A DNA stretch of 63,361 bases, filler included, from Hyphochytrium catenoides (taxonomy: Eukaryota > Protista > Hyphochytriomycota): assembly GCA_900088475.1 (NCBI GenBank). It is 7 parts of 7 records of this genome, joined end to end, with 100 filler letters (N's around TTAATTAATTAA, not from the genome) between each part and the next. Parts side by side here need not be neighbours in the genome. Positions count along the whole stretch, not along the records: positions 32,176 to 50,593 come from FLMG01000060.1; 6 more parts are not named here. One strand, written 5' to 3'. The notes under the pieces are model-generated. The model made no database searches, had not been told where the DNA came from, and was given only the letters and a program-made list of their open reading frames with translations. Below are positions 32,176-51,257 of the stretch, piece by piece. Both the position numbers and the translations under genes were made by a program. How positions within the stretch are numbered: position 1 is the stretch's first letter; every line of letters begins with the position of its first letter.

Positions 32176-32219
32176 CAACCATCCGTCCTACCATCTCGTC
32201 CTACCGATAAGACTAACCC
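32176..32219. mobile_element. Orphan terminal inverted repeat of the PIF/Harbinger-like element
   Basis: caaccatccgtcctacc...ccgataagactaaccc matches the TIR at 38662-38705 and is followed by TCA (TNA-type target). Confidence 0.6.
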
Positions 32220-32612
32220 TCAGCGATGCCGATCTACCCCCTGTCACTCTTTGAAAGCTCCGAAAAGAGGTGATTTTGGGCCGAAATCGTGCCTGAAACT
32301 TTCCCTTTAAAAAGTGCTCGTATGGTTGAAATTTTCGGTGGCGGGGTTGAAATGTATACTGAAATTTTGGATGTAACTTTCAATGTTTCGAACGTTCCTT
32401 CGACGTGGAAATATTTCCGAAAGTTTCAATGGGACAGGATTGCCGTTAGCGGCTATATGACCGTACCGGTGAGACCCGGTAGCCGTTATTGCCCAGTGGA
32501 GCTCGTTGGCTGCTCCAGGGGGGCCGACTTGATCTTGGTCTCGATCGGGATCGCAATAGTCCAATGGTTGGCTCAGAGGCCTCAAGACAGGTTTCCGAGT
32601 CCTGAGGGACGC

Positions 32613-32947
32613 GTGGGACCATAACCTGTTGGATTATATGGGATGTTGGACAATGTCATTAGATGAGAGTGCTCTACTTATAAGCCCAACTGGGGTCCCA
32701 TAATCTAGAGCTATTCTGACTATGCAAACTATTCCTAATAAACCCTAAGATATGGAGTTATAGAGATATCCCTGTCTAGAATAGTCAGTCCTGGAGGTAT
32801 CCTGGGGTACTGACCATAAGCCATAGATATAAACAGGGACATTTCCTTTACTTCATATCTCGGCTTGTACTGGGAGTTTAGAGCTGAAATTTGGGTAGTT
32901 AAGCTTGCCAGCTTGTAGTCCACATAGCTGTGCCCGCAGACTCCAAC
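32613..32947 (-). mobile_element. Copia family B 5' LTR (~320 bp) plus half-tRNA-iMet-type PBS
   Basis: Minus strand GTTGGAGTCTG...ATAATCCAACA is followed directly by GGTTATGGTCCCAC (32613-32626), complementary to the tRNA-iMet anticodon region as in Drosophila copia/Ty5-type elements. Confidence 0.8.
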
Positions 32948-32949
32948 TC

Positions 32950-33388
32950 TTCCCCTCTGCGTCGTCCGCTGTACACGTTTTGGTTTCAGCGTCGATCACA
33001 GTCCAACACTCCCCCGGAATCTAGAGAACTCTGTGAGCTCTAGATTCAAATGGAACTGTGATGGTCATCCGTGGTCACAGAACCGAATGGCTCACTATAT
33101 TGCCCGAGTTAAATCGCTCGGAGCGTACACCATGTTAGATTTTATCATTTGGTGGTGAGCACTTTGAACTAATATTGGCGGGTGTCTGGATATACCGGAG
33201 AAAGGTTTTGTACGCTCCGGTATTCGAACCCAGGACCTCTGTCTTTGATGCCGACACCCTAACCAGTATGCACCATACACCAAACGTACACTTGACTAAT
33301 CTCCGTTTTTGTTTATATACCAGGGGTTTTCCCCTCTGCGTCGTCCGCTGTACATTTTTTGGTTTCAGCGTCGATCACAGTCCCGACA
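32950..33388 (-). mobile_element. TRIM family A, copy 1 (5' LTR 33133-33388, PBS 33119-33132, PPT, 3' LTR starting 33008 and truncated by LTR-B)
   Basis: LTR TG...TCTAACA, PBS TGGTGTACGCTCCG, ~124-bp non-coding interior ending in PPT CCGGGGGAG, then a repeat of the LTR start TGTTGGACTGTGATCGACGCTG. Confidence 0.85.
33209..33289 (-). ncRNA. tRNA-like module in the TRIM-A LTR (copy 1)
   Basis: Acceptor stem GTACGTT/AGCGTAC plus discriminator A, A-box-like TGGTGTATGG, T-loop/B-box GGTTCGAAT, and TATATAAA ~30 bp upstream. The anticodon arm is non-canonical. Confidence 0.7.
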
Positions 33389-34887
33389 CAATCAACAAAC
33401 TGGTTCCATTTGTGGCTGATGAGCTTTTGTCGCTGCTGGAAGGACAACCATCAGCCTACGCGGGTGGATAAAAGTGCAGGAGCATTTGGACGGATGAGAA
33501 GGGGACAACGTTCTCAAACGTCTGCAGGAGATCACCAACTCAAGGTTTGATGCTGACGATCCCATTTCCCTGAGGTCGCACTTGACTATGCTAAGGCAGC
33601 GAACAGATGCCTTGAAAGTCACCTTCGAGAGGAGAAAGGAGAACCAGCAAGTTATTTACGAAACTATCCTGATCTCTTCCATCCTACAAAGCCTGCCGGC
33701 GTCCTTCGACTCCATAGTGAGTCATCTGCAGTATGTCCTAGAAACTTCCTCTCTGGCTGCAGACGAGGTCATCGACCGGATTTTGGCCGATGAACAGAGA
33801 AGAGTGTCTAGCTCTTCTCACTCACCAGAGCTTCCACCTTCTTCTTCGGAGCTGAATGCACTCGCTGCAAGAGAAAGTGAACGAGAGAAAAGCGCAGCGA
33901 CGACAACAACAACCTGCTTGTGGTGGCAGACAGTGCGGTATCTGCCGGAAAAGGGGGCACAATAGCGCAGACTGCTTCGATCCAGAGAAGAATGCTGTGC
34001 GCAGGCCATCAGGCTGGAAGCCTCGCAGGCCTTGTCTGCTGCTCTCCTATCCTCCACTTCTTCTTCTCCCGGAGGGGTTCAAACTAATATATTGGTGGTA
34101 TTAGCCAATCAGTATGCAAGATCTTCTGCCAACTCTGGTGAATCTCTTACCCTAGCTTCTATCCAGCAAGCTGCAGCGAAGGCGAAAGAAGTCCAGTGCA
34201 GCCATAAATGGCTGCTAGACAGCGGATGCTCCAGCCACATTACTGGAGATCGATTACTCTTTTTTTCTTTCACTCCTATTGACCCTCTTCCTCTTTTACC
34301 GCTGACAACCGGCCAGTTTTGCCTTGGGAAAGTGAAGCATACTTCCCTGCCGCCAATAGAGCTACCACTCCTCTCTACCTGCCTAATGTGCTCTATGCCA
34401 GCCCAATAGATCCAAGAATCCTCTTCTGGTGAAGCAGTGTTATTTACCTCAATGGAGCTTACACTCTAAGTCATTCTTCACTAATCAAGGACATTGCAAA
34501 GTTAACCTCTCAAGAACAAGTGAGACGTATTGGTTTGACCAATGGAACCGTTTGTTCTCCTCGGACACTGGCGATGCACGGGGACAAAGTGACTCTTCTC
34601 CTCCAAGACTAGCCGCAGCTACGAGCAAGCAAGAGCCTATCACCCTGTGGCACAAACGGGTTAATCATCTTAATCATACAGATATATGAAGACTAACTGT
34701 ACAGGCTTCGGGTATAGCTCTTGATAGAGCTTGTCAGCAGGCGTGCCTCTGTGAGACCTGCATCCTAGCCAAGCTACTAAAACGTAAGCCTTACCACGCT
34801 CAGCCTCGCAAGACAACAAGACTGCTTGAACTTCTGCACGCTGACGTCGGCATTGTCAATACTCGTAGCTACCAAGCCCGCTATGTA

Positions 34888-35287
34888 TAGCGTCGATCAC
34901 AGTTCAACACTCCCCCGGAATCTAGAGAACTCTGTAAGCTCTAGATTCAAATGGAACTGTGATGGTCATCCGTGGTCACAGAACCGAATGGCTCACTATA
35001 TTGCCCGAGTTAAATCGCTCGGAGCGTACACCATGTTAGATTTTATCATTGGATGGTGAGCACTTTGAATTAATATTTGGGGGTGTCTGGATATACCGGA
35101 GAAAAGTTTTGTACGCTCCGGGATTCGAACCCAGGACCTCTGTCTTTGATGCCGACACCCTAACCAGTATGCACCATACACCAAACGTACTCTTGACTAA
35201 TCTCCGTTCTTGTTATATACCAGGGTTTTTCCCCTCTGCGTCGTCCGCTGTACACTTTTTGGTTTCAGCGTCGATCACAGTTCAACA
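34888..35287 (-). mobile_element. TRIM family A, copy 2 (5' LTR 35034-35287, PBS 35020-35033, 3' LTR internally deleted), 5-bp TSD ATGTA
   Basis: Same architecture as copy 1. ATGTA at 34883-34887 and 35288-35292; copia integrase coding remnants continue on both sides. Confidence 0.85.
35110..35190 (-). ncRNA. tRNA-like module in the TRIM-A LTR (copy 2, best preserved)
   Basis: GTACGTT-TG-GTGTATGGTGCATAC-...-AGGTC-CTGGG-TTCGAAT-CCCGG-AGCGTAC-A, with a fully paired T-stem, TATATAA at about -29 and TTTT starting 5 nt downstream (35102-35105). Confidence 0.75.
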
Positions 35288-35719
35288 ATGTATAATTTCT
35301 ACTCGTTGTAGATGATCACTCGCGGAGGTGCGTTTGTACAATTTCTTAGAAGAAAGCAGAGGCAGAAAGGAAGCTGGAGGAGCTAATTCTCCTTTATGGA
35401 GAAACAGACGGGTGAGCGCGTGAAGGAGATACGCTCCGGTCGCAGGGAAGAGTTCGTTAGCAGTGCTGTCCGCGGAGTGTGCTCTCGCCGAGGGATCCTG
35501 TACTCTACTACCCCTGCTTATTCTGTTATTTTATATGGGATGATTGGACAATGTCATTAGATGAGAGGACTCTCTCTACTTATTATAAGCCCAACTGGTG
35601 TCACATAATCTAGAGCTATTCTGACTATGCCAATTATTCCTAATAGAGCCTAAAATAATCAGTCATAGAGATATCTCTGCCTAGAACAGTCAGTCTTGAA
35701 GGTATTCCGGAGTACTGAC

Positions 35720-36583
35720 TGTTGAACTGTGATTAACGCTGAAACCAAAGAGTGTACAGCGGACGACGCAGAGAGGAGAACCTCTAGTATATAAACAAAA
35801 CGGAGATTAGTCAAAGTGTACGTTTGGTGTATGGTGCATACTGGCTAGGGTGTCGGCATCAAAGACAGAGGTCCTGGATTCGAATACCGGAGCGTACAAA
35901 ACCTTTCTCCGGTAGATCCTCCAGACACCCCCCCAATATCAAATGAAGTGCTCACCATCCACTGATAAACTCTAACATGGTGTACGCCTCCGAGCGATTT
36001 AACTCGGGCAATAGATTGAGCCATTCGGTTCTGTGACCACGGATGACCATCACAGTTCCATTTGAATCTAGCCTTACAGAGTTCTCTAGATTCCGGGAGT
36101 GTTGAACTGTGATCAACGCTGAAACCAAAGAGTGTACAGCGGACGACGCAGAGCGGAAAAGCCCTGGTATATAAACAAAACGGAGATTAGTCAAAGTGTA
36201 CGATTGGTGTATGGCGCATACTGGTTAGGGTGTCGGCATCAAAGACAGAGGTCCTGGGTTCGAATTAAAAACGCTTGGCGCTGATAACAATATTCTCCAC
36301 ACTTCTACCTAGCGCTGAAGCAATCAGACAATGTGCAATTTTCTGGAGATCTCGACGCGTTTATCAAAGAGGCTAAAGGAAACAACATCTCGCCACCAAC
36401 CTCGCTCTTCATCGTACATCGAGAAATCTATGCAATGTAAGCCCAAGAACCAAGTAATCTCGTTCTAGCGGGTCTTCTACAGCATGCGGGGAGGTGTTGA
36501 ATGTTCATCTTCGACCCTCCTTCACAATGGGGAGTTCGAGCTGCGGGGAGGTGTTGGAGTCTGAGGGCACGGAGACTCCAACA
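35720..36583 (+). mobile_element. TRIM family A, copy 3, chimeric (LTR 35720-35977, PBS from 35978, PPT, second LTR 36100-36265, then foreign copia-type 3' sequence), TSD CTGAC
   Basis: TGTTGAAC start, TCTAACA end, then TGGTGTACGC(C)TCCG. CTGAC at 35715-35719 and 36584-36588. Confidence 0.85.
35818..35898 (+). ncRNA. tRNA-like module in the TRIM-A LTR (copy 3); a truncated fourth copy lies at 36198-36265
   Basis: Same 81-nt module; TATATAAA at 35788-35795, exactly 30 bp upstream of G1. Confidence 0.7.
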
Positions 36584-36949
36584 CTGACCATAGGCCATAG
36601 ATATAAACAGGGCCATTCCGCTTGATTCATATCTCGGCTTCTACTGAGAGTTTGGAGCTGAAACTTGAGTAGTTAAGCTTGGCACCTTGTAGTCCACATA
36701 GCTGTGCCCTCAGACTCCAACATATTCACCCTCTAGCAACAAATGCTGTGAACGCTGGATGAGGACTGTCATTCAGCAGGCGGCGATATGCCTTCTGGTT
36801 GCTACTGACCTTCCTCGTTTGTTTGGGCACATGCATTGGCGTTTACAAGGGAAGAGTGGCGTTTACAAGGAAGAGTTGATACAATTCGAGCTAGGTGTGT
36901 ATAGAGAGTGATTACTGCACTACTGACAACGAGCATTTCAACATTATTC

Positions 36950-39147
36950 AACGGTTTGAGGGAACGGCTATGCGGACTGCAAGCTGGCAAGCTTAGCTAC
37001 CCAAGTTCCAGCTCCAAACTTCTAGTAGAAGCCGAGATATGAATCAAACGAAGTGACCTTTTTTATATCTATGGCCTTATCGTAAAGGCCCCCAAATACC
37101 TTCAGGACTGAGTGAGGGTTAGTCTTATCGGGGGGACGAGTTGGTAGGACGACCAGGGTCGTTAGCGGCTCAATCCAACCGAGAAGTGAGGGCTTCGACA
37201 AGACTCGCAATTTACCTGCTGGCGGTCGGACTGAGGGACGCAAAGCCTCAATTTCAACCCACAGGGGCTTCAGCACAAATGGACTTTTTCGTGTTTTGTG
37301 TGTCTGTGTGTGTGTGTGTTTGTGATCAAAATTTCACTATTTGGATTTTCACTAATCACTATTTGGGCTTTTTCTTTGGGTTTAAATCTGGGTACTTTGG
37401 GGATATAAAAGAGGTTAGACTAGAAGCGAAAGGGTTTCTATGAATATAACTCGAATTTGTAACGCGAGACGTATTACCATAACCGAGACACATCGCGTGC
37501 GTCCACGCGAATTTGTGCTGTAACCTCATATTACCTGAGACGTATCACCTACAATCCTGCGTCGTTAGCTGTACGAGTTGAGGGTGGGGGTGACATGTCA
37601 CGCAACTCCTGCAGCAGTCGAGAGTTGGAGAAAGTTTCGCCACTCACTCACTCACTCACTCACACTCACTCACTACTCGGTTGTAGGAAGCGTGGGTGAA
37701 GGAGTAGAGAGATCCTTCAGAGAGTGTGCCTATCTAGGAATTACTACGAGTACTGAAAGAACTAGTTCTCAGTTCTACAGGTTGTAGTTCTATAAGGAAT
37801 GAAGAGCTCCTGGTGTTACAAGTACAAGTACAACTAGATCAGTGATCCAAGCATCTTCCACTGATAATGCAGCCGAAGGCTGGATTACGCACTAGTAACA
37901 TCGGGCGAGCCCTAGGCGCAGCCTAAAGCTATTGATAACCAGAAACGAAGAGCAGCCCCTTGCAATAGTAGTAAGATGATGCCAGCAGCAACTAGCAAAT
38001 AAAGCGCAGAAGAAGAATTGTTTTCGGCAATTCGGATCCTTCCGAGTGACGGGAAGAAAGAGAGCTGGCAATTCGGCTTCCTTTGTTAGTCTGGTGGCTT
38101 GTTGTGTCCACTTCTTGGAAGAGGACAGAGGAGATGATGAGGAGAGCAGCGACAGCGGCCATCTGCTTTCTTGGCTCTTTTAATCAGTTAAAAAGAGAGA
38201 AAGAACCGGCGCATCAACACTGGGATTCCATTACAGTCTCTTGCCGCGATCAAAGAACAGAAGAAAGAGGAGGGTTCGTTGCTCTCTTCATTCATCTTTG
38301 AACAACCGCCCCAGTTAACTTTTGCAGTGCGCAGGAGGAGGAACGCGCCGCCCTCTTCTGCCGTACTGTTGATAGTCGGAAGAAAGAAAATCTCTTTACT
38401 CTGCACCTTTTCCTCTTCCTTTTTTAGAGGAGTGCAAGAAGAGATCGACACAAAGCCAAAAAAGTAAGTTGGTCCATCTACAATTCTTACAATCCCCCGA
38501 TTATTATTGCTTTCTGAAGCCCTTGAAGCTCGTCTCAACTTCCTCAACGGAAATTTTTGAAGCGAAGGTAATATTTTATTCATAATCGTCCTTGCAATAC
38601 CTCCCGTCCTAGCAAAATCTCCGTCCTACCGTCCAGCCAAAAATTTCACTTTCCCACGATCCAACCATCCGTCCTACCACCTCCTCCCCCCGATAAGACT
38701 TACCCTGACTGTTTTAGACAAGGGACATCACAATGACTGAATATCTTAGGATTTATTGGGAATATTTGGCAGGGTCAGATTAGCTTTAGATTGTGGGACC
38801 GCCGTTGGATGCTTCACTCAAGGGAGTTGGAGTGGCGGCAGGTGCTGAAGTCTGAGGGCCTATTTCTATGGGGTGCAAGCTGGCAAGCTTAGCTACCCAA
38901 GTCCTAGCTCCAAACTCTCAGTAATAGCCGAGACATGAGAACAATTCGATTTTTGGGGCCTGTTTGTTTCTACCGCTTAGGGTCAGGACCCCGGGTTAAC
39001 TTCAAAACTGACTGTTCAAAATATAAACATCTCTATGACAACCGACTGAGTATCTTCTTAGGTTCGATCATGGTTCAATATGAATAGGTGACATAGTAGT
39101 CAGAATAGGTCTAATTTGGAGAATCCCAGTAGTTTAGCTTACCAACA
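36950..39147 (+). mobile_element. Two further diverged LTR-B copies (~36950-37115 + 38706-38810, split by the Harbinger-like element; and ~38843-39147)
   Basis: Shared core caagctggcaagcttagctacccaag...agccgaga(t/c)atga...cttca(g/a)(g/a)actga; the second copy is preceded by a purine tract. Confidence 0.65.
37116..38705. mobile_element. Non-autonomous PIF/Harbinger-like DNA transposon (~1.59 kb)
   Basis: ~36-bp imperfect TIRs GGGT(T/A)AGTCTTATCGGGGGGA(C/G)GAG(T/G)TGGTAGGACG, TGA on both sides (37113-37115, 38706-38708), and the flanking LTR-B resumes on each side. No transposase ORF. Confidence 0.75.
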
Positions 39148-39224
39148 CCTCCCTGCAGCTCGAACTCCCTTCCATCCCGGCAGCTGGAACTCCGTTGAGC
39201 GGTCGAGGGTGAACCTTCAACATA

Positions 39225-39471
39225 AGGTAGTAGACAAAGATGATCTTTGACAAGCCGGGAATCGAACCAGGTCCTTCCTTCAGCAATGCCAGCACGCTAC
39301 GGCGTCTGCATCAATACACCAGGTGGCTGTTATTTAGTGATTTAGTGGGTCCTTATAGCCGTCTTCCTTCTGTGGTTTTAGCCGTGACCACCCCGGACCA
39401 GGAGCATACGCATTTAGAATGTGATGCGGACTAAGTTGAGCCTTACATTAGCCAATGTACAGATTCCAACA
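39225..39471 (-). mobile_element. Second tRNA-like-module LTR (family C), truncated
   Basis: Minus strand begins TGTTGGAATCT at 39471, with CTATAAG ~25 bp before TGGTGTATTGATGCAGAC...TAGCGTGCTGGCAT...GGTTCGATTCCCGG (39248-39331), similar to the family A module. Confidence 0.5.
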
Positions 39472-40117
39472 ACACTGACGACTCATATTATGTAAGACTC
39501 CAGATGAGTTGTCATTCACGGGCTAGATTCACAGTCATACCACCGTCGATCTCTTGTTGTGCTTTGTGTCGGTGAAGGGGAAGATCGTCGGTTGGTCGAA
39601 AACGGACGGGTATTCGCCACATAATCACACTAATAATAGAGGGTGCTCTGCAAAGAGATATGGGTCTAGCATTATTTTCGAAGTGGTGATTTCTTTATCG
39701 TGTCAGCCTCTTGAACGGGAGACCTGTGAGCGGCTAACTGGGTAAGATGTCGTGGTGTATTAGTATGTTATAAAACTCTGTTCGGGCTGATGTAATGAGA
39801 CGAAGAGGGTGGTCGTCGTCATCATCGTACAATAAAAAATAGGTCATTATGATACAATATAATGGTGGGATTCGGCAGGGGATGATGGCCCTTCTTCCTA
39901 AGAGTGGTGGAGGAGGACCTGCTGCTCAGGCCCTCCATCTGCTACAGTAGTCTCGCCCCATCCCTGTTGTTGCTTGCCGCCGCTTGATCTTCGAAAAGTA
40001 TTACATTGACAATTGCGGCGTCCTCTCTACTTCTGCAGTGGGCTTGGCTATTGTTGAATCGACCTCCTACTTTCAGATGCCTGGTAACTCAAATCAGCTC
40101 TTCCTGCTTTGATATTC

Positions 40118-41470
40118 TTACTCCACCAAAAGATTACGGAGACAGGCGTACAGAGGAATGAGAAAAATCGGCACTGCGTTTGATGGTGTCCAGTAAGCAG
40201 GCCGCATGGTTGACGCTAGTGAAGAGCTGGCAGTGGGTGATGTATTTCCAAGAATTTGGCTGTAAGCGCCGGGAGGATACACGCCCGGTAGATACACGAG
40301 GTAGCTCTTCTGAAAGTAGTCGTAGCTGTACGCTTGGTAGCTGCGTTGCATCTTGACAGTCATATTCGGTCCGGGAGAATTCAGAAAATCAGTAACCCCA
40401 GTCCAGATCATGATGCCCAAGGCGCTCTTGGCAGTGACAGTGGAGAGGTAGTCCCTATTGTCTTGGGCTGTGGGTCCCACTTCTGGCATAAAAGAGCATG
40501 AGGGTCCGATGCACGTCCCAATAGCAATGCGAGCAGGATGGACTCCCATTGCAACAAGACGGTCAAAGCTCTGCGGCACAGAGTCATAGTTCGCTCTCAT
40601 TCCCATATTGTAGGCCATCCAAAATACCATGTCAATCGCAGGCATCACGGCCATGAATGTGGGCTGATAGGGGCTCCAGCTCTCCTGTATTGTTGAGAAT
40701 GCAGACCACGAGATACATTTTCCTTGGCCGGACAGGGCAGCGCGGGTAGCACTGACGAAGCTGGCGGCAACGGAGGGATTTTGAGTCTGGTCGCTTTCGC
40801 TGTTCAGGCATTCATAATCAAAATCAACTCCGTCAAAGCCGAACTCCTGCACGTAACCACGCAGAGCACTTGCAAAAGCTACCGCTCTGCCCTGTAGCTT
40901 GGGACCGAACATGAAGTCACCGAACAGGCCAGCGCCGCAGTTACTAGCCCCGCCGACGGAAAGGAAGACTTTGGAACCCTTGGCGTGGAACATGTCAACG
41001 CCCTGACGCAGGGCTCTTCTGTCATTAAGGTAGGAGGCCGCGGGGTCAGCAGGTAGTCCTGAGCTATTGATCTGGGAAAAGGAAAAGAGTGCGATTTTGG
41101 GAAAATTCGGATAGTCAAAGAGCGAGACGTTGCCTAACTGCCAGGACTCGTAGTAGGCGACGATCAGCGGCAGATCAGAAGAACTCAATCCGCATTGAAA
41201 GCTGCCAGAAAAAGTGGCGAGGGAGGGTGCGGCGGGTGAGGCCGGGGAAGGCGAACCCCGCCCTTCCGTGCCCTCCCTGGTTGATCCCAACCCTACATCC
41301 GTTTGTTCCTGGAGCTGCTGACCCGTTGCAGGCATCATAATGATGGACGGAAGGAGGAGGACCAGTAGGGCAATATAAAAGTAGGCAAGGAAGCTCAAGA
41401 CGCGGAGAGGTCTCGTAGGAGGCAGCAGGCAGTCGAAGAAGAACGACGACGCCATAAGCCCGGAACACAT
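40118..41470 (-). CDS. GH18 chitinase, single exon, N-terminal signal/anchor and possible GPI-type C-terminus
   Basis: Catalytic FDGVDFDYE (DxxDxDxE), KVFLSVGG, WMAYN and GIMIW motifs. Hydrophobic VLSFLAYFYIALLVLLLPSII near the N-terminus; Ser/Thr-rich spacer plus hydrophobic C-terminal tail. First ATG at 41470. Confidence 0.88.
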   Translation of the reverse strand: MCSGLMASSFFFDCLLPPTRPLRVLSFLAYFYIALLVLLLPSIIMMPATGQQLQEQTDVGLGSTREGTEGRGSPSPASPAAPSLATFSGSFQCGLSSSDLPLIVAYYESWQLGNVSLFDYPNFPKIALFSFSQINSSGLPADPAASYLNDRRALRQGVDMFHAKGSKVFLSVGGASNCGAGLFGDFMFGPKLQGRAVAFASALRGYVQEFGFDGVDFDYECLNSESDQTQNPSVAASFVSATRAALSGQGKCISWSAFSTIQESWSPYQPTFMAVMPAIDMVFWMAYNMGMRANYDSVPQSFDRLVAMGVHPARIAIGTCIGPSCSFMPEVGPTAQDNRDYLSTVTAKSALGIMIWTGVTDFLNSPGPNMTVKMQRSYQAYSYDYFQKSYLVYLPGVYPPGAYSQILGNTSPTASSSLASTMRPAYWTPSNAVPIFLIPLYACLRNLLVE

Positions 41471-42568
41471 GGTTCTCTGTTTGCTACTCAAGAGGGACGA
41501 CACTAGTCCGAGCAAGGACTGCAGAGATCCAGCACTAAGACAGCAGCAGAGGACAGAATGAGATGTATGTTTAACTCCGGATAGGACCCTCAGACCTAAG
41601 CTACTTTTGCGCGGGGAAGAGGACTGATGGGTATCGAATAGATTGCAGACTGTGGCCACGGCAAAAGGAGTACTAAGCGCCTTACAAGGGAAAAGGAGGC
41701 GTGAAGCTGCATCGTCGTTCTAAAATCTTCACTTTTAAGCACCTACGCTGGACTCCAACATCCTCCTCTTCCTCTAACTAATAGCGCCAGCAGCGCCTTC
41801 CCACTCTTTCATTGTCCAACATTCTTCTTCTTCCTCCTCTTCCTATATCACTCTTCACTGCCCACCCACCGCCGCCCGTCATGTGGTGGGATCGTGTTGC
41901 TTTGCGCAGTGTCAGAGACCTTTGCTAACGGCGGCTGGCGGTGGCGGCCGCTGTGCTCTCTCCTCTGTGCTCTCTCAACCTCCACGCACAGCCCCGGCGG
42001 CCGTTGAAGGAAAGAATGGTTTGCAAGAAGCGAGAAAGAAAGGTGGGGAGGAGAGGACTTGGGAGAGGACTAGCGCTGGGGCCTGGCCGCCAAGGAAACA
42101 AAGGCTGGTCATCTAGTAAATAACACAAGGATGGGCGAGGCGAAGGAGAGCCGTTACCCGTCAAGTAAGTAGCCCTTCTTTCTTTCATTATTGATGACTG
42201 TAAGAATGCGCTCAGGAGCCTAAATGGCGATTTGGAAAAATTGATCAAGCACATTTCTTAGGTCTTGGCGAAGGTTTCATCGAAGATTCGAGGTTTATCC
42301 GTCCTGTGAGTTTATTAGTGAAACCTAAAATGCTTTCACTTTTCACTTCGAAACATTCACTTTCGTTGCTGCTTTAATATCCTTTGTACGGTGAGGCCTT
42401 AGAGTGCCTCGACCGCTGTCTGAATGACGGGCCTGAGCACTCCTGTCCTAACGCTGAGCGGAACAAGGGGCTTGGAGAAGGCGGCGAGGGAGCGGCCCGG
42501 AGCGGTGAGCGCGAGGTCTTCAGACTCATTTCTGGGACTCGGGCCCGCTTAGGAAGGAAGAGAGGAAG

Positions 42569-45500
42569 ATGACATCTCTGGCAGCAGAGACGGGGAGAGG
42601 GCGAGGGGGAGGAGTGATGCAGAAAGGCCAAGGGCGCCCAATAAACGCAAGCAGGGAGATCGGCAAAAGGGGAAGAAGAGGAAGAAGAAACTTCCGTCGT
42701 CAGTTGAAGAGATTGAGCACTACAGCTTTCGGCTTCCACTCACTGTCTCCCGCCGCCTTTCTTCCATCCCTTGTGCGTCCCAAAGAGTGGCAGTCCATGG
42801 TGCTTCAGCTCTTCCTTCTTCAACATGCTCCCGGTTCATCATCCTCTTTCCCTACCGGGTCCTCCTCTATTATTGTCCATCAGGATCCCACTTCTTGTTG
42901 ATTGCTTGTGCTGCTGGAAGAGGGCTACAGATTGTACTCTATAGGCAAGGGACCCTGTCTACCTCTGTGCTTAATGAGAGCTTTCAATTTCCTATGTGCG
43001 TGCGTTGTGACGTCAAGGGTACCTGCCCCTTCCGCCCACCCTCCCGTCCACTAGCCTTTTACGATCGTCCCTTTTTATATCACCATAAAGCTGCGCACTC
43101 AGCCTGGGCGGTCGCCTTCTACGTCTTCCTCGTGCTCATGTGCCCACGAAGAACCCCGCGTCCCACTTTTCAAAAGCTAACTTACGCTGCACATCTTACC
43201 GCTTCCTTTGCATATGGAGTACTCAAAGCTCTGGGAGTCGACAATGTCCTCCTATCCTGTCTCCAGCATAGCTTGCCAATGCTCGCAAACTCTGAAGCTG
43301 ATCGTATAGTTTTGACATTGATGCTTCCAGAGCTACTTTCGTCCCAGCCGCTTTAGTCCTCCTATTCTCTTCGCTCAGCGTTCCAAATGCATGAGTTCCC
43401 GTCAGCCCTGGCGCTCCGGGGGCTCGTGGTCTACGCGACCAATCCCCCGGGCTTCACCACCGTCCCCACCCCAGCCATAGGATCTGGTGGAACCTTTCCT
43501 CCTCCGCTGTTGCCGCTCACTCCCAGTAAGTACTAGCGCTCTTCTTTCTCTCTCTTTCTTGTGTGTCTCGCCGTTGCTCTGCTTAGGGGCGGGTTTGGCC
43601 TCCCGACAATTGGTCTTACGCTCTCACTCTCTTGTCTTAAGACAACCTCACCATAGTGCCATTCTTGGGTCCTCCCATGCGATTAGTGCGTTTATGCCTA
43701 GGTTTCCCCATCTCGCTCCTACGCCCTTTCCTCTTCTTCTTCTTCCACATTCGGCAGCTGTATCAGCAAGGTCGGACGATGTGTCACTGAGTTGTTTCTT
43801 CGTACACTTTCCTCGTTCCCACCTCAGGCCAAGAGAGTTATTCTCTGTATGACTGGGTCCTCACCTCTCTCATTGCGCTCCTGTTCTTTCTGGCCTTGGT
43901 GCATGCGCTGTGCAAGTTCGCTCTTAATCTCTACGTCATGGCGCTCGTCACTGTCCGGTCTGACAGCTGCCGCTCTGTCATCTCGCTCGTGCTTCTTTGC
44001 CTGTATGTGCCGTACACTTTGTTCGTCAACTACATCATGATTGACACCATAAACTGGGACGCGCTTCTACATCTCGATATCCCTCTTGCCTTTTCTCATT
44101 CTCTCTTCTCTCATCCTTGGAGAGTCTTTCTTCTTCCTGAGCTCTGTCTCCTCACCCTCCTCGGACTTGCACAAGTCCTCATAGCGCTCTGGGCCTGGGC
44201 GTCTGCGCCGTCAGAGAAAATGGTAATGAGGGAGATCCTCAATCAGCCTGTTCTGCCTGATGTGACAGTCGTGATGCCGATCTACAATGAGCCACTCCCT
44301 TCTCTCATGGCCGCTGTCAACAGCGTGGTAGCCTCTCTATACGCCAAAGAGACAGAGGGCAAACAGAAAAGGGGGAAGGTTGACCTCATTTTAGCTTTTG
44401 ACGAAGGGGAGATGACACCACTCTACCTCTCGACGCTGTACTGTTTCCTCCACTATGGCGATCCCCAGCGTAAGCCCCTCTCGTCTCTTGCTATGCAGGA
44501 CTACATGGGGATTGAGATGAACATCCAAAACCTTCAGCGCGCCGATCCCCTGCTCAAAGGGAGGAGCTTCTCCTCCATCCTTCCGCTGAAATATCAAGGA
44601 ATGGCCGTTACTCTTTGCCGCTTTCCGCACGGAGGGAAGCGCCACGCGCAACATTGTGCCTTCAGCCTTCTTCAGAACAGATGGGAACCGAAGGGACAGG
44701 CTCGAGAGGCGAGAGGCAACGAAAGACCTGGAGAAGACGAAGAACAGACGGGTAGTAAGCCTCTCCTTCTCTTTATCGACTCGGATATTGTCCTTCATCC
44801 CTCCGCAATGCACTTGCTAGTTTGGGACTTCATCAAGCCACTTCCAAACCGTCAGGCGCGTCCATGGGGAGTCACTGGACTGATTGTCTGTAAGACGAAG
44901 GGACAGTGCAGCATATTGGCAGCTCTGCAGGACGCAGAGTACATCGAGGGCCAGGTGTTTATCCGACAAATGGAGCATTGCCTTGGCTTCGTATCCTGCC
45001 TGCCCGGTGCCCTCACAATGATGACCTATGAGGCCCTCGAGGCAGTGCAGAAGGAGTACTTCTGCCCTCCAGAGCAGGGCAGAAGAAAGAAATCGACCGG
45101 TAAAGACAGAGGTAGCAGCGCTTACGACTTTGCTCGCACTCACTTGGGCGAGGACAGATATCTGACGCATCTCTTCATGGAGAAGAGCGGACGAAGGGGG
45201 ACAACAGCTTACCAAGCAGCGGCGCGATGCGAGACCGAGGGAGTCACTTCCCTCTTCGCCCTCATGAAGCAACGCCGCCGCTGGCTGCTGGGAGGTATCA
45301 CAAATGATATCTCGATGTATACGGATCCTCACCTTTGGAAGGCCTTCTACGTCCCTCTGTCTGTCGCACTAGTCAGGCAGTTTACAGGCCCTCCCATTCT
45401 TTGCTTCTACATCCTCTTCGCAGAGCTCGCGGTGGGAGAGATCTCCGCGGTCTGGTGGCTGTTACCCATGCTGGCAGTGCTCTGCCTCTCCTTCCTCTTC

Positions 45501-46211
45501 CTCACCGTGCACACAGCGAGGATTGGACACAAGCGGATCGTGCTCTTCTACCCTCTGCTCCGCCTCCTTCTCCCCCTCTTCTCTTTGTGCTTTGAAGTCT
45601 ACACTCTCTGTACCTTTGGCAAGCAGACCTGGGGAGGGCCGAGGGTCGGAGGAGAAGCGAAAGGAGCGCCACCAGGGAAGGAAGAACCCGGATTCCCTCC
45701 TGCTTCATCAGCTGACCCAGTCTCATTCTCATATTTTGGGAGCTTCACGTTGGCCAGTGAAAGGTCAAGGCGTTGTTTTAGGGGAGAAGGAGATAGGAAT
45801 ACGTTTCTTGGAGAATCTCTCTCTCGCTCTCTCTTCCAGTCCTCTCCCATCACTACTCCTCCTGCTGCCGTCTCGAGCCCGGTGTCCTCTCTGTATCAGA
45901 AAGAGCTACGAATAGGTTCTCCCTCCTGTGCGCGTACTCTCTCCTCCCAGCAGCACAGCATCAGACAGGATCCTTTGCTTTCTGAACAAGGAAGGAGAGA
46001 GATCACGCCGTCCTTTCTCTTTCTCTCTTCACCTGAGAGCCCCGCGACCTCAAGCCGGCAAGTCGACGAGGATAGAGTGCAAATAATGCTGGAGAGCGGG
46101 GGAGGAAGCAACACTGGAAGAGGTAGCTATCACCGTGTAGAGACGCCGAAGTCTAGCTGCATCCCCTCTCTTCCGGCTCGCTCAACTATTACTGCTAATA
46201 ACATAGTATAA
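42569..46211 (+). CDS. CHS: Chitin synthase (GT2), ChsD/class VI (division 3)-like; large final exon 43828-46211, upstream exons (e.g. 43379-43526) tentative
   Basis: VVMPIYNE, RFPHGGKRHAQ, LFIDSD, LQDAEY, SCLPGALT, HLGEDRYLTHLFM and KQRRRWLLGGITND, followed by TM helices and TWGGPR. Motif order and wording match my recollection of the fungal ChsD type. Confidence 0.88.
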
Positions 46212-47321
46212 GAGTGTCCGCATTGACATTGACTGGGCATTTGGGCATCTGGCGAGCGCGAGGCCCCTCTTCCGCCTGTTTAGGTTAGCAGGTAGATCGC
46301 TAGGGAAAGTCGTAGTGCGCCTCTATTGCCCATTATGATCTACTATATTTTTTTTTTCTTTCTGCCTCTGGCTCTCTATTCTGTCGCCAGGAGCGACTAA
46401 ATTAACTGCGTTCCTCCCGGGCATCGGACGCTGCAGCTAGCCTTGTGCTAATGATTGGGTTGTTATTAGAGAGGAAGAAGGAGATGAGCCACTGACGGTC
46501 CTGGCAGCAATGGCAGCGAGCACCAGTTGGAGCTCCGTCTAACAGGCTCATCCGCTCTCTCCTCCTCCCAACCCTGCACTAGCCGGTCCGTTACTTCTCA
46601 TAACCCTGAGGACAGCGCCCTCCTGTCACTCCCTCTCCCGTCTCCCCCACCTTCCTCCTCCCTCCCTCCCGCGCCTGCTGCTGCGCCGCCTCTGTCCCAC
46701 GCTGCCGGCTGCTCTTCCCCTCTTCCTCTTCCTCCTCTGTCTCTGCGTCTCTCTCTCTCCTGTGCTCGGGGGATGACCAACTAGAGGAACATTAAGCTGC
46801 AAGCGACCCCTTTGGACAGAGCAGAGCCATAAGATGTAGGGCTTACAGGTGAGGCTGACCCGCATATTCAGGCCCTAACCTCACCCTTCAAGAAGACCAG
46901 ATTTTCAAATTTCGGCGGGTAACGGACACTTCGGCCGCCTCTCTGCCCTGTCCCCGCCCCCTCTCCATAACTCACACACGCATATCTTATCCCCAAATAT
47001 TTTCTCTCACACTTGACCGTAGCCTAATCATCATGCTTTACCCGCCCTCTGTCTCGCAACCGGCTGCCATCTTCCTCACACATTCCTCCCTCTGTCTCAA
47101 TGGGTAGTCGCTCTGTCTCCGCTGCTCTTCCTCCCTCTCCCTCTCCCTCTCCCGCCTTTCGCCGACAATGCGAAAATTTGCCGATGAATCTGCGTTGAAG
47201 CGCCGTCTTCAGTATCTGCAAGAGCTTCACGTCAGCACCTGCAGGATATCACTCCTCAGGAAACCCCGCACACCAGCTAGCTCTGCCGGTAAGGCCCCTA
47301 AAGGAACAGTGAAAAGAAAAG

Positions 47322-49163
47322 ATGGCGTCCGCACAGTCCATAGTTTCGGCAGACGTGGACAAGCTAACTGGCATTATGGACAACACGCGCGCGGAGCTGG
47401 ACCGCTGGATTGCAGGGCAAAAGGACGCCATCGACAAAAAAGAAGCAGCACACTTCTCAGCCTTAAGAGGGCTGGCAGGTAAGAGAAGAAGCAAGTTGGA
47501 GGTACAGAGAAGAGGGGTATGACGGGCATAGAAAGAGTTTGAAGTCTGGCAATGGACGAGAGTCGCGAAGACTGGAGAGGGAGATAGAAGAGATAATCTA
47601 ATGTTCTCGCACATGATTGGCAGAGCGGCTTCGGACGCTGCGGCAGCAGGAACAGGACGCCACCAGTCGGCGGACTGTCCTTGAAGAACGTAAGGGCCAG
47701 TAGCCTATCTTATTGCCTTTCCCTAGTCAACTGCCGATCATCCTCCTCAGCACTATCTTGCACCGTCCCGTCCAGCTGCCACTAGTGGTGTCTGTCTACT
47801 CACAAACCAGGATCACCTGACGTCTTCATAACTTTCTCTCCTCCTACGTCGTCTCCCTATGGCCAGGACGACAGGCTCAGGAGAAAGAGCTAGCGGCCGC
47901 AAATGCGCAAGTAGCGGCGCTGCAGGTACAATGGAGTGGCTCTTCTCTACGGCCCTTATGCTAGAACTCTAACGTTGTCTTCGTGCTTTGCCACTAGCTC
48001 GAGGCTGACTCTCGGCTGCCCAAGCTGCGATCTCTTGAACAGCAGAAGGCAGATGAGCAGGAGAAGGTAGCGGCTTTGATGCAAGGTATGCGGGAGGAAC
48101 ATACTGAACACCAGGGAAACAGGGAGCGAAAGGCAGGAAGACACAGCGAACGAGAGGAGGTGGTGCTTGAGCTTTTTAACTTTAAGCTCTGTGCCCGCGC
48201 TTTTGGTTCTCGCCTCTCTTGTCCTTAGACCCTTGTCCCTCTTAGCTAGCGGCCCCTACAGGCGATGCTCTCTTCTTAGTTCCTCTCTGTTGGGCCCTCG
48301 CTCACCCCAGCCGGCCCTACTCCACGTCCTTCTCTATCAGCTCTGAGTGCCACGCAGTCGGCTGTAGAATTTGAGTCGGAGCAGCTGCAGAGAAGCTTGA
48401 GCCTGTACAAGCTTCTCGGCCTGGAGTTTGAACGGATCACTGGTGAGAACGCAGCGATCGCCCCATTTTCTTTTAGCCGGCTACTCTCCCTCTCTCTCTT
48501 ATCATCGCATACACTCTGGCCTGTCTCCCTCTTCGTGATGCTTCTCCCTGCTCTCCAAGTGATCTGTTACCTGCCCCGCTGACCGAAAAAGTACGGCTTA
48601 GAAAGGCTCTCTGGCGTGGGGCTTGCCACAGGTTCCTCATCTTCCTCTAATCTGTTCTCTCCCTTCTTACAAGCAGAGAGCCGCCTCCGTGTGACGTTCA
48701 CCAAGCTGGATCCTACCGCCCCAGCCAGAGCTTTCCATTTCTCTGTCAGGATCGATGCCTCAGACAAATATGAAGGTCCTAAAGCCCGTCCTATCTATTC
48801 TTTATATGCTGTTTAGTTTGGTTCTCACCTCTATGTCGGCTTTAGCTGGACTGTCTTTCTCTCTTTCTTTTTTCTGTTCTCACTCTCGTCGCAGCTCTCT
48901 CTCTCTCTGCAGCTGTTCTCCTTTCAGGAGTCACTTCTTGTGTCCTTGTTTGCTATCGCTCGTAAGTTGCCTTCGTCCCTCATTTTCTCTTCCTTTTTTT
49001 CTAACCCTCTCTCTATCCTCGTCTATCTTTAGTGACGGAGTGTGTGCCACATCTCGCCGTTCTCCCTGCGCTGCTGGAGGAGCTTAACCGCACGAATAAC
49101 TTCTCTCTCTTCGTGCGGACAATGCGCCAGCAATTTAAGGCTCTCCTTGCCAACGGGAGGTAG
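47322..49163 (+). CDS. SPC25: Kinetochore NDC80-complex subunit SPC25, about 7 exons
   Basis: N-terminal coiled-coil exons, then LYKLLGLEFERI / RLRVTFTKLDPTAPARAFHFSVRID..KYE / VTECVPHL..LLEELNRTNNFSLFVRTMRQQF (Spc25 RWD domain); GT-AG introns. Confidence 0.85.
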
Positions 49164-51257
49164 AGAGAGAGAGGAGCACAGAAACGTGCGCTGCCTGAAA
49201 AACTCGCGAGTGAAAATAAGAGAAGGAGAGAGAAACAAGGGAGAGAAGGAAGAGAGAAAGAGAGCATGGGAGTTCAAAAGGCCGACCAGAGAAGGACAGA
49301 CGGAGAGGAATACGCATTTTATGGGATCTCGCTGGGTAGCGGAGTAGTGAAGTGACAGTTGAGTTAGAGAGTGGCGCTGGTGAAGGCCTTAATAGGTCCT
49401 TCAGGCGCGCCAGGCAAGTGTATAATGAGCCCGTTGCAGGGCTAACAGTGTTTTGACTGCAATGATCAGCCCTAAGAAACCGAAAGTCTATTAAGAACAT
49501 GTCGCAAACAAGAAGAGGAAGAATGTCCAGCCCGAGGAGGAGGAGAGGACACGCTGTCGAGACAGAGAGCACAAGAAGTAAGGAAAGTGATCATCCGATG
49601 GGCAACGTCACGCTTCTCTCCTCTCGGGCCCCTAGGCAGTAGCTCCCTTCCCATTAAGCTTCTCGATCTCCCACAAGGGACAAAGGGCTCGCACCAAGCC
49701 CCAGCGGTCAGAAGCCCCAAGAAGGCCGGACTCCTAGTGAAGAGCCAGCTCCGTGACGACCTTTCCCTCAGCCTTCCAAGGGCGGCAGTGCCGTGGGCAG
49801 GAGAGATGTCTCTTCTGAGCCCGAAGATTTCCCAGTGAGCCCTGCGCTTGGTCCCCCATCTGTGTCAGGAAGTGCTACTATATGAAGTGATCATAATTTC
49901 TCTTTTGCTTTGCTTTGCTTTGCTGTGTCATTTATGTTCATAAGTGACAGGATGTGAAGTTAGGTTGCGAGGCTAGCATTATCTTGGACCATATCAGCTT
50001 GTAATTTACAGTCAGTGTGGAAAAGGGCTTACGAGAGGTGAAATAAGGTTGAAATACGCGGCTTGCTGTTCGTGGCTGGGGTTCTGGGGCCCCAACCAGC
50101 TTGAGAACACTTCATTAGCGAGAGAGAGAGAGAGAGANNNNNNNNNNNNNNNNNNNNNNNNNNGAGCAGAGAGAGAGAGAGCAGAGAGAGAGAGAGAGAG
50201 AGAGAGAGAAGGGAAGCGCACCAGCGGAGGAGAGAAATGTAAACTTCTTAGTTCTACTAGGACCGAGATCTGTCATTGCCAGTGCCTCTCAAGCCTGTTG
50301 CTGCTCAGCCCCAGACCGTCTGCCCTAGGCCAACCTGGGATATAGCTCTGATAGAGTCCTTATCCCTGCACCGCGCCCTGACACTTCTCACAGTGTCTGC
50401 TAACTCCACCCTCTAGAGGTACCGCTGCTGGCTGTCAGGCGCAGTGGCAGCCTCCCGCTCCTTCCTCACAGCATTATTTCCATCCTCCATCCTCTCTGAG
50501 TTAACACTGCGACTTCTCGTCACCAGCGACAAAGGCGGACCGGACCACCTAGGTTACATTCTCTGCTAGCCTTACCCGCTGTCTTCTTTCGCTNNNNNNN
50601 NNNNNNNNNNNNNNNNNNNNNNNNNNNNNNNNNNNNNTTAATTAATTAANNNNNNNNNNNNNNNNNNNNNNNNNNNNNNNNNNNNNNNNNNNNCTTGCTC
50701 TTGATCTGTACATCTGTCGTCTCTCCTCTCGCTCTCTCTCGCCTCAACTCTCTCTCTCTCTCCGTTCTTCTCTCTTCTTCCTCTTTCTGGTGGATGGCGC
50801 AAGCCTCAAGGAAAGAGAAGAGACGACAGCTTCAGACGATCTTTCCGTCATTGCGAATTCTGATGCAGAGAGACTGACTTGGGCCGTAGGAAGATAGTGA
50901 CTCCTCATCAACGGAAGCAGTGCCGTGCCGTCTCTTCACTTACATTATCCTCATCTAGAAGTCGTTGGTCTCTCTTCTACTCTTCTCTCTATCTACTTCT
51001 ACCTCCAGCTGCTCATTGTGTTAGCTGGCTATGGTGTTCTTTGGCATGGTTTCCTGACCTTATTGTCAGCAGACGTGGTCTCTTCTCTTCTTCAAGAGAC
51101 ATCGGAGGTCCTTGACCGATCGATCTCCCTTTCGATCTGGCTTTCGCGCCTCCCGCGCTTGGCACCTCCCTCTTTCTTTTTCGTTAGAGCGTCAGGAGCG
51201 GTGTAATGGGGCTGCCTCTCTCTTCTTCCCCGCCTTTCGCTGTACAATGACCGCACA

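Follow-up and report, generated by a model that had tools for sequence, protein, structure and literature searches.

In the genome of Hyphochytrium catenoides (GenBank assembly GCA_900088475.1), a non-coding TRIM of ~630 bp carries a PBS, TGGTGTACGCTCCG, that matches as an exact complement the CCA-extended 3' terminus of a tRNA-like module contained in its own LTR. LTR retrotransposons and retroviruses are understood to rely on a primer tRNA taken from the host, and fold-back priming of the Tf1 type is, to our knowledge, the only exception. The complementarity suggests that an RNA derived from the module may be the primer for reverse transcription of the TRIM, a possibility to which we assign close to an even chance. 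The full scheme, in which this LTR element would own a primer gene, with the LTRs acting as Pol III units and a host-matured, CCA-tailed product annealing to the PBS and thereby freeing the TRIM from the primer tRNA of its autonomous partner, is a more tentative proposal.

Three copies of the TRIM, recognized by their alignment with one another, are located within positions 32948-36265 of the window, i.e. the entire analyzed stretch of 63,361 nucleotides, filler included (Table 1). The LTRs are 254-258 bp long and bounded by TG..CA, and the interiors of 122-124 nt contain the PBS and, just before the TGTTG of the 3' LTR, the PPT CCGGGGGAG. The 3' LTR is damaged in all three copies, with 61, about 20 and 166 nt left in copies A, B and C, respectively; in copy C, it ends within the T loop of its module. 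The sequence claims of the initial annotation on this three-copy anatomy hold, with small corrections to the coordinates, including the start of the span at 32948. The same annotation placed 5-bp target site duplications at two of the insertions: ATGTA indeed flanks copy B, and CTGAC flanks copy C together with a foreign tail of 318 nt, the second CTGAC coming after this tail rather than after the end of the TRIM LTR. The last part of the tail is an X-type LTR, from a different LTR family, with an internal deletion (TGTTGGAGTCTGAGGGCAC..GGAGACTCCAACA), and CTGAC comes directly after it.

Table 1. Coordinates of the TRIM copies and their parts, numbered along the window
Feature	Position	Strand	Remarks
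TRIM copy A	32948-33388	-	5' LTR 33133-33388; interior 33009-33132; 3' LTR stub 32948-33008
3' LTR stub of copy A			adjoins a neighboring X-type LTR (32630-32947) at its start
PBS, copy A	33119-33132	-	directly after LTR end ..TCTAACA; 0 mismatches
Module, copy A	33209-33289	-	81 nt; one G-A mismatch in T stem
TRIM copy B	34888-35287	-	LTR 35034-35287 (254 nt); interior 34910-35033; 3' LTR stub 34888-34909
PPT complement CTCCCCCGG, copy B	34910-34918		in interior
PBS, copy B	35020-35033	-	exact complement of module end plus CCA
Module, copy B	35110-35190	-	perfect T arm CTGGG/TTCGAAT/CCCGG; 7-bp acceptor stem; discriminator A
Target site duplication ATGTA, copy B	34883-34887 and 35288-35292
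TRIM copy C	35720-36265	+	5' LTR 35720-35977; interior 35978-36099; 3' LTR 36100-36265
PBS, copy C	35978-35992	+	one inserted C (TGGTGTACGCCTCCG)
Module, copy C 5' LTR	35818-35898	+	81 nt
Second module of copy C, truncated	36198-36265	+
CTGAC, copy C	35715-35719 and 36584-36588
Foreign tail joined to copy C	36266-36583	+	holds PPT-like GCGGGGAGG
TATATAA at -30 of module	35788-35794	+	equivalents 33313-33319 (-), 35213-35219 (-), 36168-36174 (+)

The coding capacity of the TRIM is limited to short chance ORFs: neither the longest of these nor a 62-aa ORF that runs across the module end and the PBS has relatives in the protein comparisons. Degenerate Copia gag and pol genes are present in the same window, and the TRIM shows the hallmarks of a Copia-mobilized element, namely the 5-bp duplication, the TGTTG..ACA termini, the PPT GGGGGAG and these nearby Copia sequences. 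The best named relatives of a chitin synthase ORF are plasmodiophorid proteins with 36-38% identity (one ENA protein reaches 48%), which makes a rust fungus an improbable host, and a GH18 ORF yielded no matches in the protein search and only vague leads from the Atlas.

The module combines the ends of a tRNA gene with a ruined center. The initial annotation described a tRNA-like module with a 7-bp acceptor stem, discriminator A, a TATA box at about -30 and A- and B-box-like motifs, and each of these features is recovered: each of the three modules forms the acceptor stem GTACGTT/AGCGTAC when folded at minimum energy, the B box is a perfect one (GGTTCGAATCC), and the A box TGGTGTATGG is only approximate (TGGTG vs TRGCY). 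All three modules end with CGGAGCGTACA followed by AAA, so that the CCA is not encoded. The D and anticodon arms are wrecked, with a duplicated D region (TGGTGTA/TGGTGCA) that, along with AGACAGAGGUC, is specific to this module, and with no valid anticodon loop. As a tRNA gene, the module lacks credibility: Rfam yields no tRNA match in the modules, only one to the T arm, the tRNA model being blind to them owing to the loss of the decoding features, and ARAGORN calls only one of the three modules, that of copy B, with a 4-base anticodon. What the module retains are the requirements for 3'-end maturation, that is, the acceptor stem in all folds and, in copy B, a perfect T arm. Copy B, like a near-identical copy on a metagenome contig, has a TTTT run that starts 5 nt downstream of its module, which would give a pre-tRNA-like transcript; the other two copies in the window have only TTT after the module. 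Otherwise, runs of four or more T are missing from the sense strand, compared with 4-6 such runs of A.

The match of the PBS to this module is both exact and in register. Stripped of the CCA, the complement of the PBS stops precisely at the discriminator base, and the 11 complementary nucleotides correspond to positions 71-81 of the module, which is separated from the LTR end by 76 nt. The 14/14 match reported earlier at 33119-33132 and 35020-35033, the extra C at 35978 and the unencoded CCA were all reproduced; because the extra C in the PBS of copy C comes without a matching change in the module, it looks like decay of that copy. Only 3 of 2000 shuffles contained an 11-mer of the LTR that was complementary, at any position, to the initial 25 nt of the interior, and the chance expectation in the observed register, from after the TGG to the discriminator, is 4^-11. 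Beyond the 14-nt PBS, the complementarity of the interior to the T arm of the module is not significant (1916 of 2000 shuffles were as good), and in the minimum-energy fold of the leader, the PBS is not paired with the module end. Given that AAA follows the module, the TGG of the PBS has no encoded partner, as would be expected if the partner were an RNA with a CCA tail and not if this were a plain inverted repeat. The initiator tRNA of eukaryotes requires U72 and, because the PBS implies a C at position 72, this tRNA is ruled out as the primer. The neighboring X-type LTR element has an iMet PBS (GGTTATGG.. from 32629 downward).

Population evidence comes from contigs of three DNA runs from the same organism that were placed on the window. 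In all three, contigs pile up on the TRIM, as is the case for a highly repeated family, and the points at which they diverge into diverse flanks are precisely 35034 and 35287, which supports the LTR boundaries of copy B. The empty site of copy B, the joint 34882->35288, is seen in the three runs; genomic contigs show an LTR-interior-LTR periodicity of 378-381 nt; and the loose ends at 35719 indicate that the X-type LTR is uninterrupted in other copies. The 40 best-supported differences in sequence among the genomic copies all lie outside the PBS and the last 11 nt of the module, and both are kept in a near-identical TRIM copy from an independent metagenome run. The copies are 92-96% alike, implying a recent common master.

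By its architecture, the element is a TRIM of the Helenus/TRIMp3 type: it is shorter than 1 kb and non-coding, and has two LTRs, a module with boxes A and B, a PBS, a PPT and a 5-bp target site duplication. As in Helenus, the tRNA-derived module is located toward the 3' part of the TG..CA LTR and precedes a short T run, the PBS and PPT occupy the ends of the interior, and the length of the duplication is that of the fungal and plant families (4 bp in the animal ones). The PPT GGGGGAG and the LTR end TCTAACA of the TRIM resemble those of the group of Helenus-5_PSt, 7_PHor and 3_PPol, in which the LTRs (246-262 bp) and interiors (115-120 nt) are also of similar length. Six diagnostic strings of the TRIM are absent from the published consensus file of Kojima, with only short terminal motifs shared with named Helenus families. 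The Helenus A box was given as TRGCY..YGG (PMC10886601), and the comparison with Helenus drawn in the initial annotation is correct.

The TRIM departs from Helenus in its duplicated D region, in the distance between the module and the LTR end (76 nt vs about 15-45 nt in the published fungal families compared) and, above all, in its PBS, which complements its own module plus CCA and is neither the 3' end nor the anticodon half of iMet. In the published fungal Helenus consensus sequences that were compared, the PBSs are of the iMet type and unrelated to the modules of the respective elements. [quoted passage not shown] The coupling is thus new for this kind of element, as the earlier claim that it had not been described would have it, and the match in the TRIM is not a general by-product of the Helenus architecture. 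Literature searches on primers encoded by an element and on the PBS sequence itself returned nothing relevant; a gypsy element of Culex that came up, at whose PBS there are CCA-ended tRNA copies, is a different thing.

How a module RNA might act can be outlined on the assumption that the TRIM is mobilized in trans by a Copia-type element. Every LTR would constitute a small Pol III gene, with the upstream TATA box, the internal A-like and B boxes and a T run after 5 nt, and Pol III would transcribe the module from any LTR, solo LTRs included. Thanks to the intact acceptor/T-arm minihelix, RNase P would cut at G1 and RNase Z after the discriminator A, and the CCA-adding enzyme would extend the end to ..CGGAGCGUACACCA, yielding a mature RNA of ~84 nt that is expected to end with GCGUACACCA. 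In the particles of the partner, this RNA would anneal to the 14-nt PBS of the read-through genomic transcript and prime the minus strand. Plus-strand strong-stop synthesis would then copy the 3' end of the primer, such that the PBS would be rewritten from the primer in each cycle, which would explain the exact match between the PBS and the module. A minor variant, in which the 5' module of the same transcript primes in cis by folding back through the 11 encoded bases, as in Tf1, lacks support from the leader fold, where the PBS and the module end are unpaired. More speculatively, an element of this kind might become independent of the host tRNA supply and escape silencing by tRNA fragments.

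The principal competing explanation, which we consider a substantial possibility if a less probable one than the proposed primer gene, is that a host tRNA ending with ..CGGAGCGUACACCA is the primer, the module being a decayed relative of that tRNA by common descent that serves as a Pol III promoter or has no function. A PBS that begins with TGG right after the LTR is the classic sign of a CCA-ended host tRNA, and every characterized LTR element with a PBS of this type that we know of primes on a host tRNA. Moreover, the TRIM relies on the particles of its partner, which package host tRNAs; Helenus modules come from tRNA genes and often retain the acceptor stems, so that the source tRNA may share the end; and a canonical tRNA ending with ..CGGAGCGTACA (GCGTACA), if present, would be the simpler primer. 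Priming by a module RNA faces difficulties of its own, given that processing by RNase P and RNase Z would extend to the modules of the genomic RNA and cut it there, that the A box is imperfect and that, in two of the three copies, the T run behind the module is no longer than TTT. The host tRNA explanation, however, requires either a mechanism of capture or a coincidence with odds of about one over the number of tRNA species, and a captured mature primer tRNA should carry the CCA, whereas the module ends like a gene, at the discriminator, with a T run behind it; capture of a mature primer tRNA into the LTR is, for this reason, thought to be unlikely. The last 11 nt would also have had to stay identical to the host tRNA while the remainder of the module changed so much that the tRNA model no longer recognizes it, and no published Helenus family shows a coincidence of this kind. 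In published Helenus families, the acceptor stems are paired and vary in sequence (e.g. GTGCACT/AGTGCAC), which indicates that module ends drift from the host tRNAs and makes an accidental match to one of these less likely. A metagenome scan with the pattern GTACGYT-N(50-80)-CGGAGCGTACA, which is too loose, gave at least 120 chance matches and is uninformative with regard to a host tRNA; among the matches listed, none is a TRIM copy and none overlaps a tRNA. The exact 22-nt module end has no matches in prokaryotic genomes and viral contigs, as expected of a eukaryotic repeat.

Two further interpretations carry far less weight. The module RNA or its 3' fragments could block the PBS, for copy control or silencing, or pairing within the genomic RNA could mask the PBS or aid packaging. 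Complementarity between the PBS and the module would suit an inhibitor equally well, and, in mammals, 3'-CCA tRNA fragments directed against PBSs are an established route of silencing. Regulatory pairing is improbable all the same: a family that inhibits itself is not expected to reach the observed abundance, pairing within the RNA is not favored in the leader fold, and the identity of the primer would still call for an answer. Even more improbable is a historical relic, whereby the match was installed once, by mispriming or recombination in a master copy, and persists in the recent descendants of that copy. The recent shared master implied by the similarity of the copies fits this scenario, and there is no subfamily diversity that would show maintained co-variation. 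Amplification to a high copy number, however, needs a PBS that matches a working primer; an RNA with this 3' end must accordingly exist, which leads back to the two main explanations, a module RNA or a host tRNA.

Cassandra and Ajax are also non-autonomous elements with a small Pol III gene inside the LTR that is thought to drive transcription, but the gene derives from 5S rRNA, has no 3' end fit for a CCA tail and has no reported relation to the PBS. Tf1 and Tf2 of Schizosaccharomyces pombe self-prime, i.e. the element gives its own primer, with 11 encoded bases complementing the PBS. In Tf1, the transcript begins with these bases, and the RNase H of the element releases them, whereas the 11 bases of the TRIM are not at its presumed transcript start but terminate a tRNA-like fold on the 3' side, 76 nt ahead of the PBS. 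In addition, the TRIM PBS has three more bases (TGG) that match only a post-transcriptional CCA, and the primer could, unlike that of Tf1, be supplied in trans from any LTR. In mascRNA from MALAT1 and similar RNAs, a non-decoding tRNA-like fold with acceptor and T arms is known to undergo cleavage by RNase P and RNase Z, followed by CCA tailing, and the T arm of the module gives a weak match to the corresponding Rfam family, RF01684; the homology is limited to that arm, and the setting (a mobile element) and the proposed use (a primer of reverse transcription) are different. With Ty1/Copia elements, the TRIM shares the TGG PBS directly after the LTR, the 14 nt of complementarity and the 5-bp duplications, the differences being that the matching RNA end is encoded in the element and that position 72 is occupied by C instead of the U of the initiator tRNA.

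Should a host tRNA prove to have the same end, what would remain of the finding is a Helenus family that is new and whose host probably lies beyond the range known so far. With the module RNA as the primer, this would be a third priming strategy of LTR elements, next to host tRNAs and self-priming of the Tf1 type, and the TRIM described here displays the complementarity exactly and in the right register, the non-encoded CCA included. Such priming would provide a reason why elements of this kind retain an intact acceptor stem, would make the PBS re-targetable in a single step by a co-packaged RNA, and would offer a compact system for the study of primer choice. It would also imply a new, abundant class of small RNAs with a CCA tail, to which tRNA predictors and small-RNA pipelines would assign wrong labels.

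Three copies (A, B and C) of one non-coding miniature LTR element (TRIM) of about 630 bp lie within 32948-36265, and their LTRs, each with an 81-nt tRNA-like module, are 92–96% alike (see the table). The 3′ LTR stub of copy A adjoins the start of an LTR of a different, X-type family (it runs TGTTGGAGTCTG..CCAACA and bears terminal inverted repeats), which is present at very high abundance in the DNA runs of the organism. Copy B, with ATGTA on both sides, has a degenerate Copia element as its insertion site, in the integrase region; the Copia element is split by this copy and truncated by an X-type LTR. The 3′ LTR of copy C breaks off within the T loop of the module and is followed by a foreign tail that contains a possible Copia pol C-terminus, a PPT-like GCGGGGAGG and a short TGTTGAATGTTCA.. 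unit, and ends in the terminus of an internally deleted X-type LTR. CTGAC borders the whole unit (copy C and the tail), which itself lies within another X-type LTR. Speculatively, this unit could be a recombinant cDNA of two co-packaged RNAs, which would suggest an X-type element, with its initiator-half PBS, as the partner of the TRIM; the GGTTATGGTCCCA that follows one X-type LTR resembles the PBS for the anticodon half of the initiator tRNA that is found in Copia and fungal Helenus elements.

Coordinates of the TRIM copies and of the features around them
Feature	Position	Strand	Remarks
TRIM copy A	5′ LTR 33133-33388; interior 33009-33132; 3′ LTR stub 32948-33008	-	stub of 61 nt; module 33209-33289
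TRIM copy B	LTR 35034-35287; interior 34910-35033	-	3′ LTR of ~20 nt; module 35110-35190
TRIM copy C	5′ LTR 35720-35977; interior 35978-36099	+	3′ LTR of 166 nt; module 35818-35898
Foreign tail	36266-36583		318 nt, follows copy C
X-type LTR	32630-32947	-	adjoins copy A stub; then GGTTATGGTCCCA
X-type LTR, in two parts	35519-35719 and 36589-36729		holds copy C unit
X-type LTR	38843-39150	+	
Degenerate Copia element	33389-35518	+	gag with zinc knuckle, protease/Pol_BBD, integrase; stop codons present
LTR-like unit	39130-39476	-	divergent tRNA-like module at ~39250-39330
GH18 hydrolase	40118-41659	-	host gene past the LTR debris
Chitin synthase	43896-46211	+	host gene past the LTR debris; intron-free ORF, 771 aa

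Nested LTR-element debris occupies 32176 to ~39500 of the piece 32176-50593; in a spacer within it, at 37290-37320 and 37640-37670, are the short simple repeats (TG)n and (CACT/CTCA)n. A PPT followed by about 20 nt of LTR start recurs at 34888-34909, 36503-36559 and 39142-39229, the latter two being short units with just these first ~20 nt; the 3′ LTR of copy B ends ~20 nt in, yet the duplication is retained. Such units reflect either internal deletions in which the final base was spared or a side product of reverse transcription. The two host genes are arranged divergently. The closest named relatives of the chitin synthase ORF are plasmodiophorid enzymes (36–38% identity) and those of chytrids, not Dikarya, with no close rust or other dikaryan protein among them, and the search for GH18 relatives at E<=1e-10 returned none. 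A tentative lead from these comparisons is that the organism probably lies outside Pucciniales and may be a sparsely sampled eukaryote that makes chitin.

The element was compared with contigs that three DNA runs of a single organism yielded; those of all three runs pile up on the TRIM and split into unrelated flanks at exactly 35034 and 35287, so that both ends of the LTR are fixed. The joint of 34882 to 35288, found in one contig per run in all three runs, shows other copies of the Copia element with the site of copy B empty, and an uninterrupted X-type LTR at 35719 is seen in other contigs. Joints that step back 378–381 nt imply that complete LTR-interior-LTR elements exist. An unrelated rhizosphere metagenome run contains a 411-nt contig with ~5 differences from copy B; the contig pile-up and such near-identical copies in independent data indicate that the TRIM family is real and highly repeated. 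The three insertions of the initial annotation are confirmed, and the contigs support the LTR limits and the copy B empty site.

The PBS, TGGTGTACGCTCCG, opens the interior immediately past the LTR end ..TCTAACA. It is complementary to CGGAGCGTACA+CCA, whose initial 11 bases equal the final 11 of the module, up to the discriminator, and the CCA has no encoded counterpart, in agreement with the original claim that the PBS is complementary to the module 3′ end plus an unencoded CCA. An 11-mer complement anywhere from the LTR to the interior start arises in ~0.15% of shuffles, and the expectation for an 11-mer match in the observed register is 4^-11. In copy C the PBS holds one additional C that its module does not mirror, apparently a sign that this copy has decayed. 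Of the differences between genomic copies, the 40 with the best support all lie outside the PBS and the last 11 nt of the module; this is weak evidence, as it covers these 40 and not the 53 with less support.

The module is preceded in each LTR by TATATAA at -30, has the layout GTACGTT..(B box GGTTCGAATCC)..AGCGTAC-A, and has AAAC behind it, then a short stretch of T (TTTT in the metagenome contig as in copy B, TTT in copies A and C). All three copies form the acceptor stem in their minimum-energy folds. The T arm is perfect in copy B; in A and C, pair 53:61 is its single mismatch. The T loop at 35126 (TTCGAAT in copy B) is TTCAAAT in most genomic copies (58–98% of contig depth in the three runs) and in the one metagenome contig covering this position; both are normal T-loop forms of tRNA. 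The D region includes TGGTGTA TGGTGCA, a sequence duplicated in tandem, and a proper anticodon loop is lacking. None of the modules was recognised by the tRNA model of Rfam, with the T arm alone scoring in a 141-nt search, and ARAGORN called a tRNA in one copy alone, with an anticodon of four bases. Rather than a decoding tRNA, the module is a promoter-bearing minihelix of tRNA-like form.

Helenus elements, defined as TRIMs with tRNA-like sequence in the LTR, occur in fungi, animals and plants, and are grouped with Cassandra and Ajax as TRIMp3 (Kojima 2024, PMC10886601). Fungal Helenus, most of which occur in Pucciniales, make duplications of 5 bp; their PBSs are Copia-like and in most cases fit the anticodon half or 3′ end of the initiator tRNA (PMC10886601). 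In the portion of the published consensus sequences compared here, the PBSs read TGGTAGCG.. or GGTTATGAG.., with no relation to the module ends, and the modules have a generally paired acceptor stem of family-specific sequence and a T run behind them. Like the present TRIM, these consensus sequences have GGGGGAG as PPT and LTRs that end in TCTAACA, and one group among them (LTRs 246–262 bp, interiors 115–120 nt) has the same dimensions; the diagnostic strings of the present TRIM are absent from the consensus file (PMC10886601). The TRIM is Helenus-type by every structural criterion tested, and its assignment to Helenus/TRIMp3 is supported; the initial comparison with Helenus is correct. The LTR-like unit 39130-39476 starts with TGTTGTTGGAATC and has a TATAAG box, followed by the module ..TGGTGTATTGATGCA..GGTTCGATTCCCGG..; the acceptor strands of this module are unpaired, and no complement to its 3′ end was found nearby. 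This unit probably represents a second family of Helenus-like elements in this genome and lends itself to comparison.

An element-encoded primer, including a small share for a cis variant like that of the self-priming element Tf1, has, judging from the sequences, close to an even chance of being correct; the mechanism is an unproven proposal, though plausible and open to test. The module RNA would be trimmed like a pre-tRNA, then CCA-tailed, and would act as the primer. The unencoded CCA points to a CCA-tailed RNA as the primer, which favors the module RNA, as does the exact retention of the end-processing parts of the module when the rest has decayed. The PBS also favors it, being, unlike those of neighboring elements and published fungal Helenus, not of the initiator type because position 72 is C; eukaryotic initiator tRNAs have U72. 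In the retroviral mechanism, plus-strand strong-stop synthesis rewrites the PBS from the 3′ end of the primer, so that one priming by co-packaged module RNA would install exactly TGGTGTACGCTCCG. What speaks against a module primer is that the genomic RNA would also be cleaved by the tRNA-processing enzymes and that some copies have a weak A box and a weak terminator.

Somewhat less probably, the primer is a host tRNA that shares the 3′ end of the module, and the module is a relative of that tRNA. Primer and module species would then coincide by pure chance, with odds of roughly one over the number of tRNA species, and acceptor sequences drift among Helenus families, so that a host tRNA identical over 11 nt is not what one would expect by default; no such coincidence is seen in Kojima's families (PMC10886601). 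A metagenome scan with a module pattern too loose to bear on a host tRNA gave chance matches only, among the matches listed, and the module end had no matches in prokaryotic and viral collections, as expected. Regulatory or relic readings take up the rest of the probability.

The possibility that the tRNA-like sequence is a primer was raised for Helenus by Kojima, who found no PBS complementarity and concluded that it has no role in initiation (PMC10886601). The PBS-module match sets the present TRIM apart from those families, and no later literature on an element-encoded primer was found, so that the coupling was rightly called undescribed. This exact complementarity of the PBS to the 3′ end of the TRIM's own module with added CCA is new for Helenus/TRIMp3 and is at odds with the negative statement that accompanied the definition of Helenus (PMC10886601).
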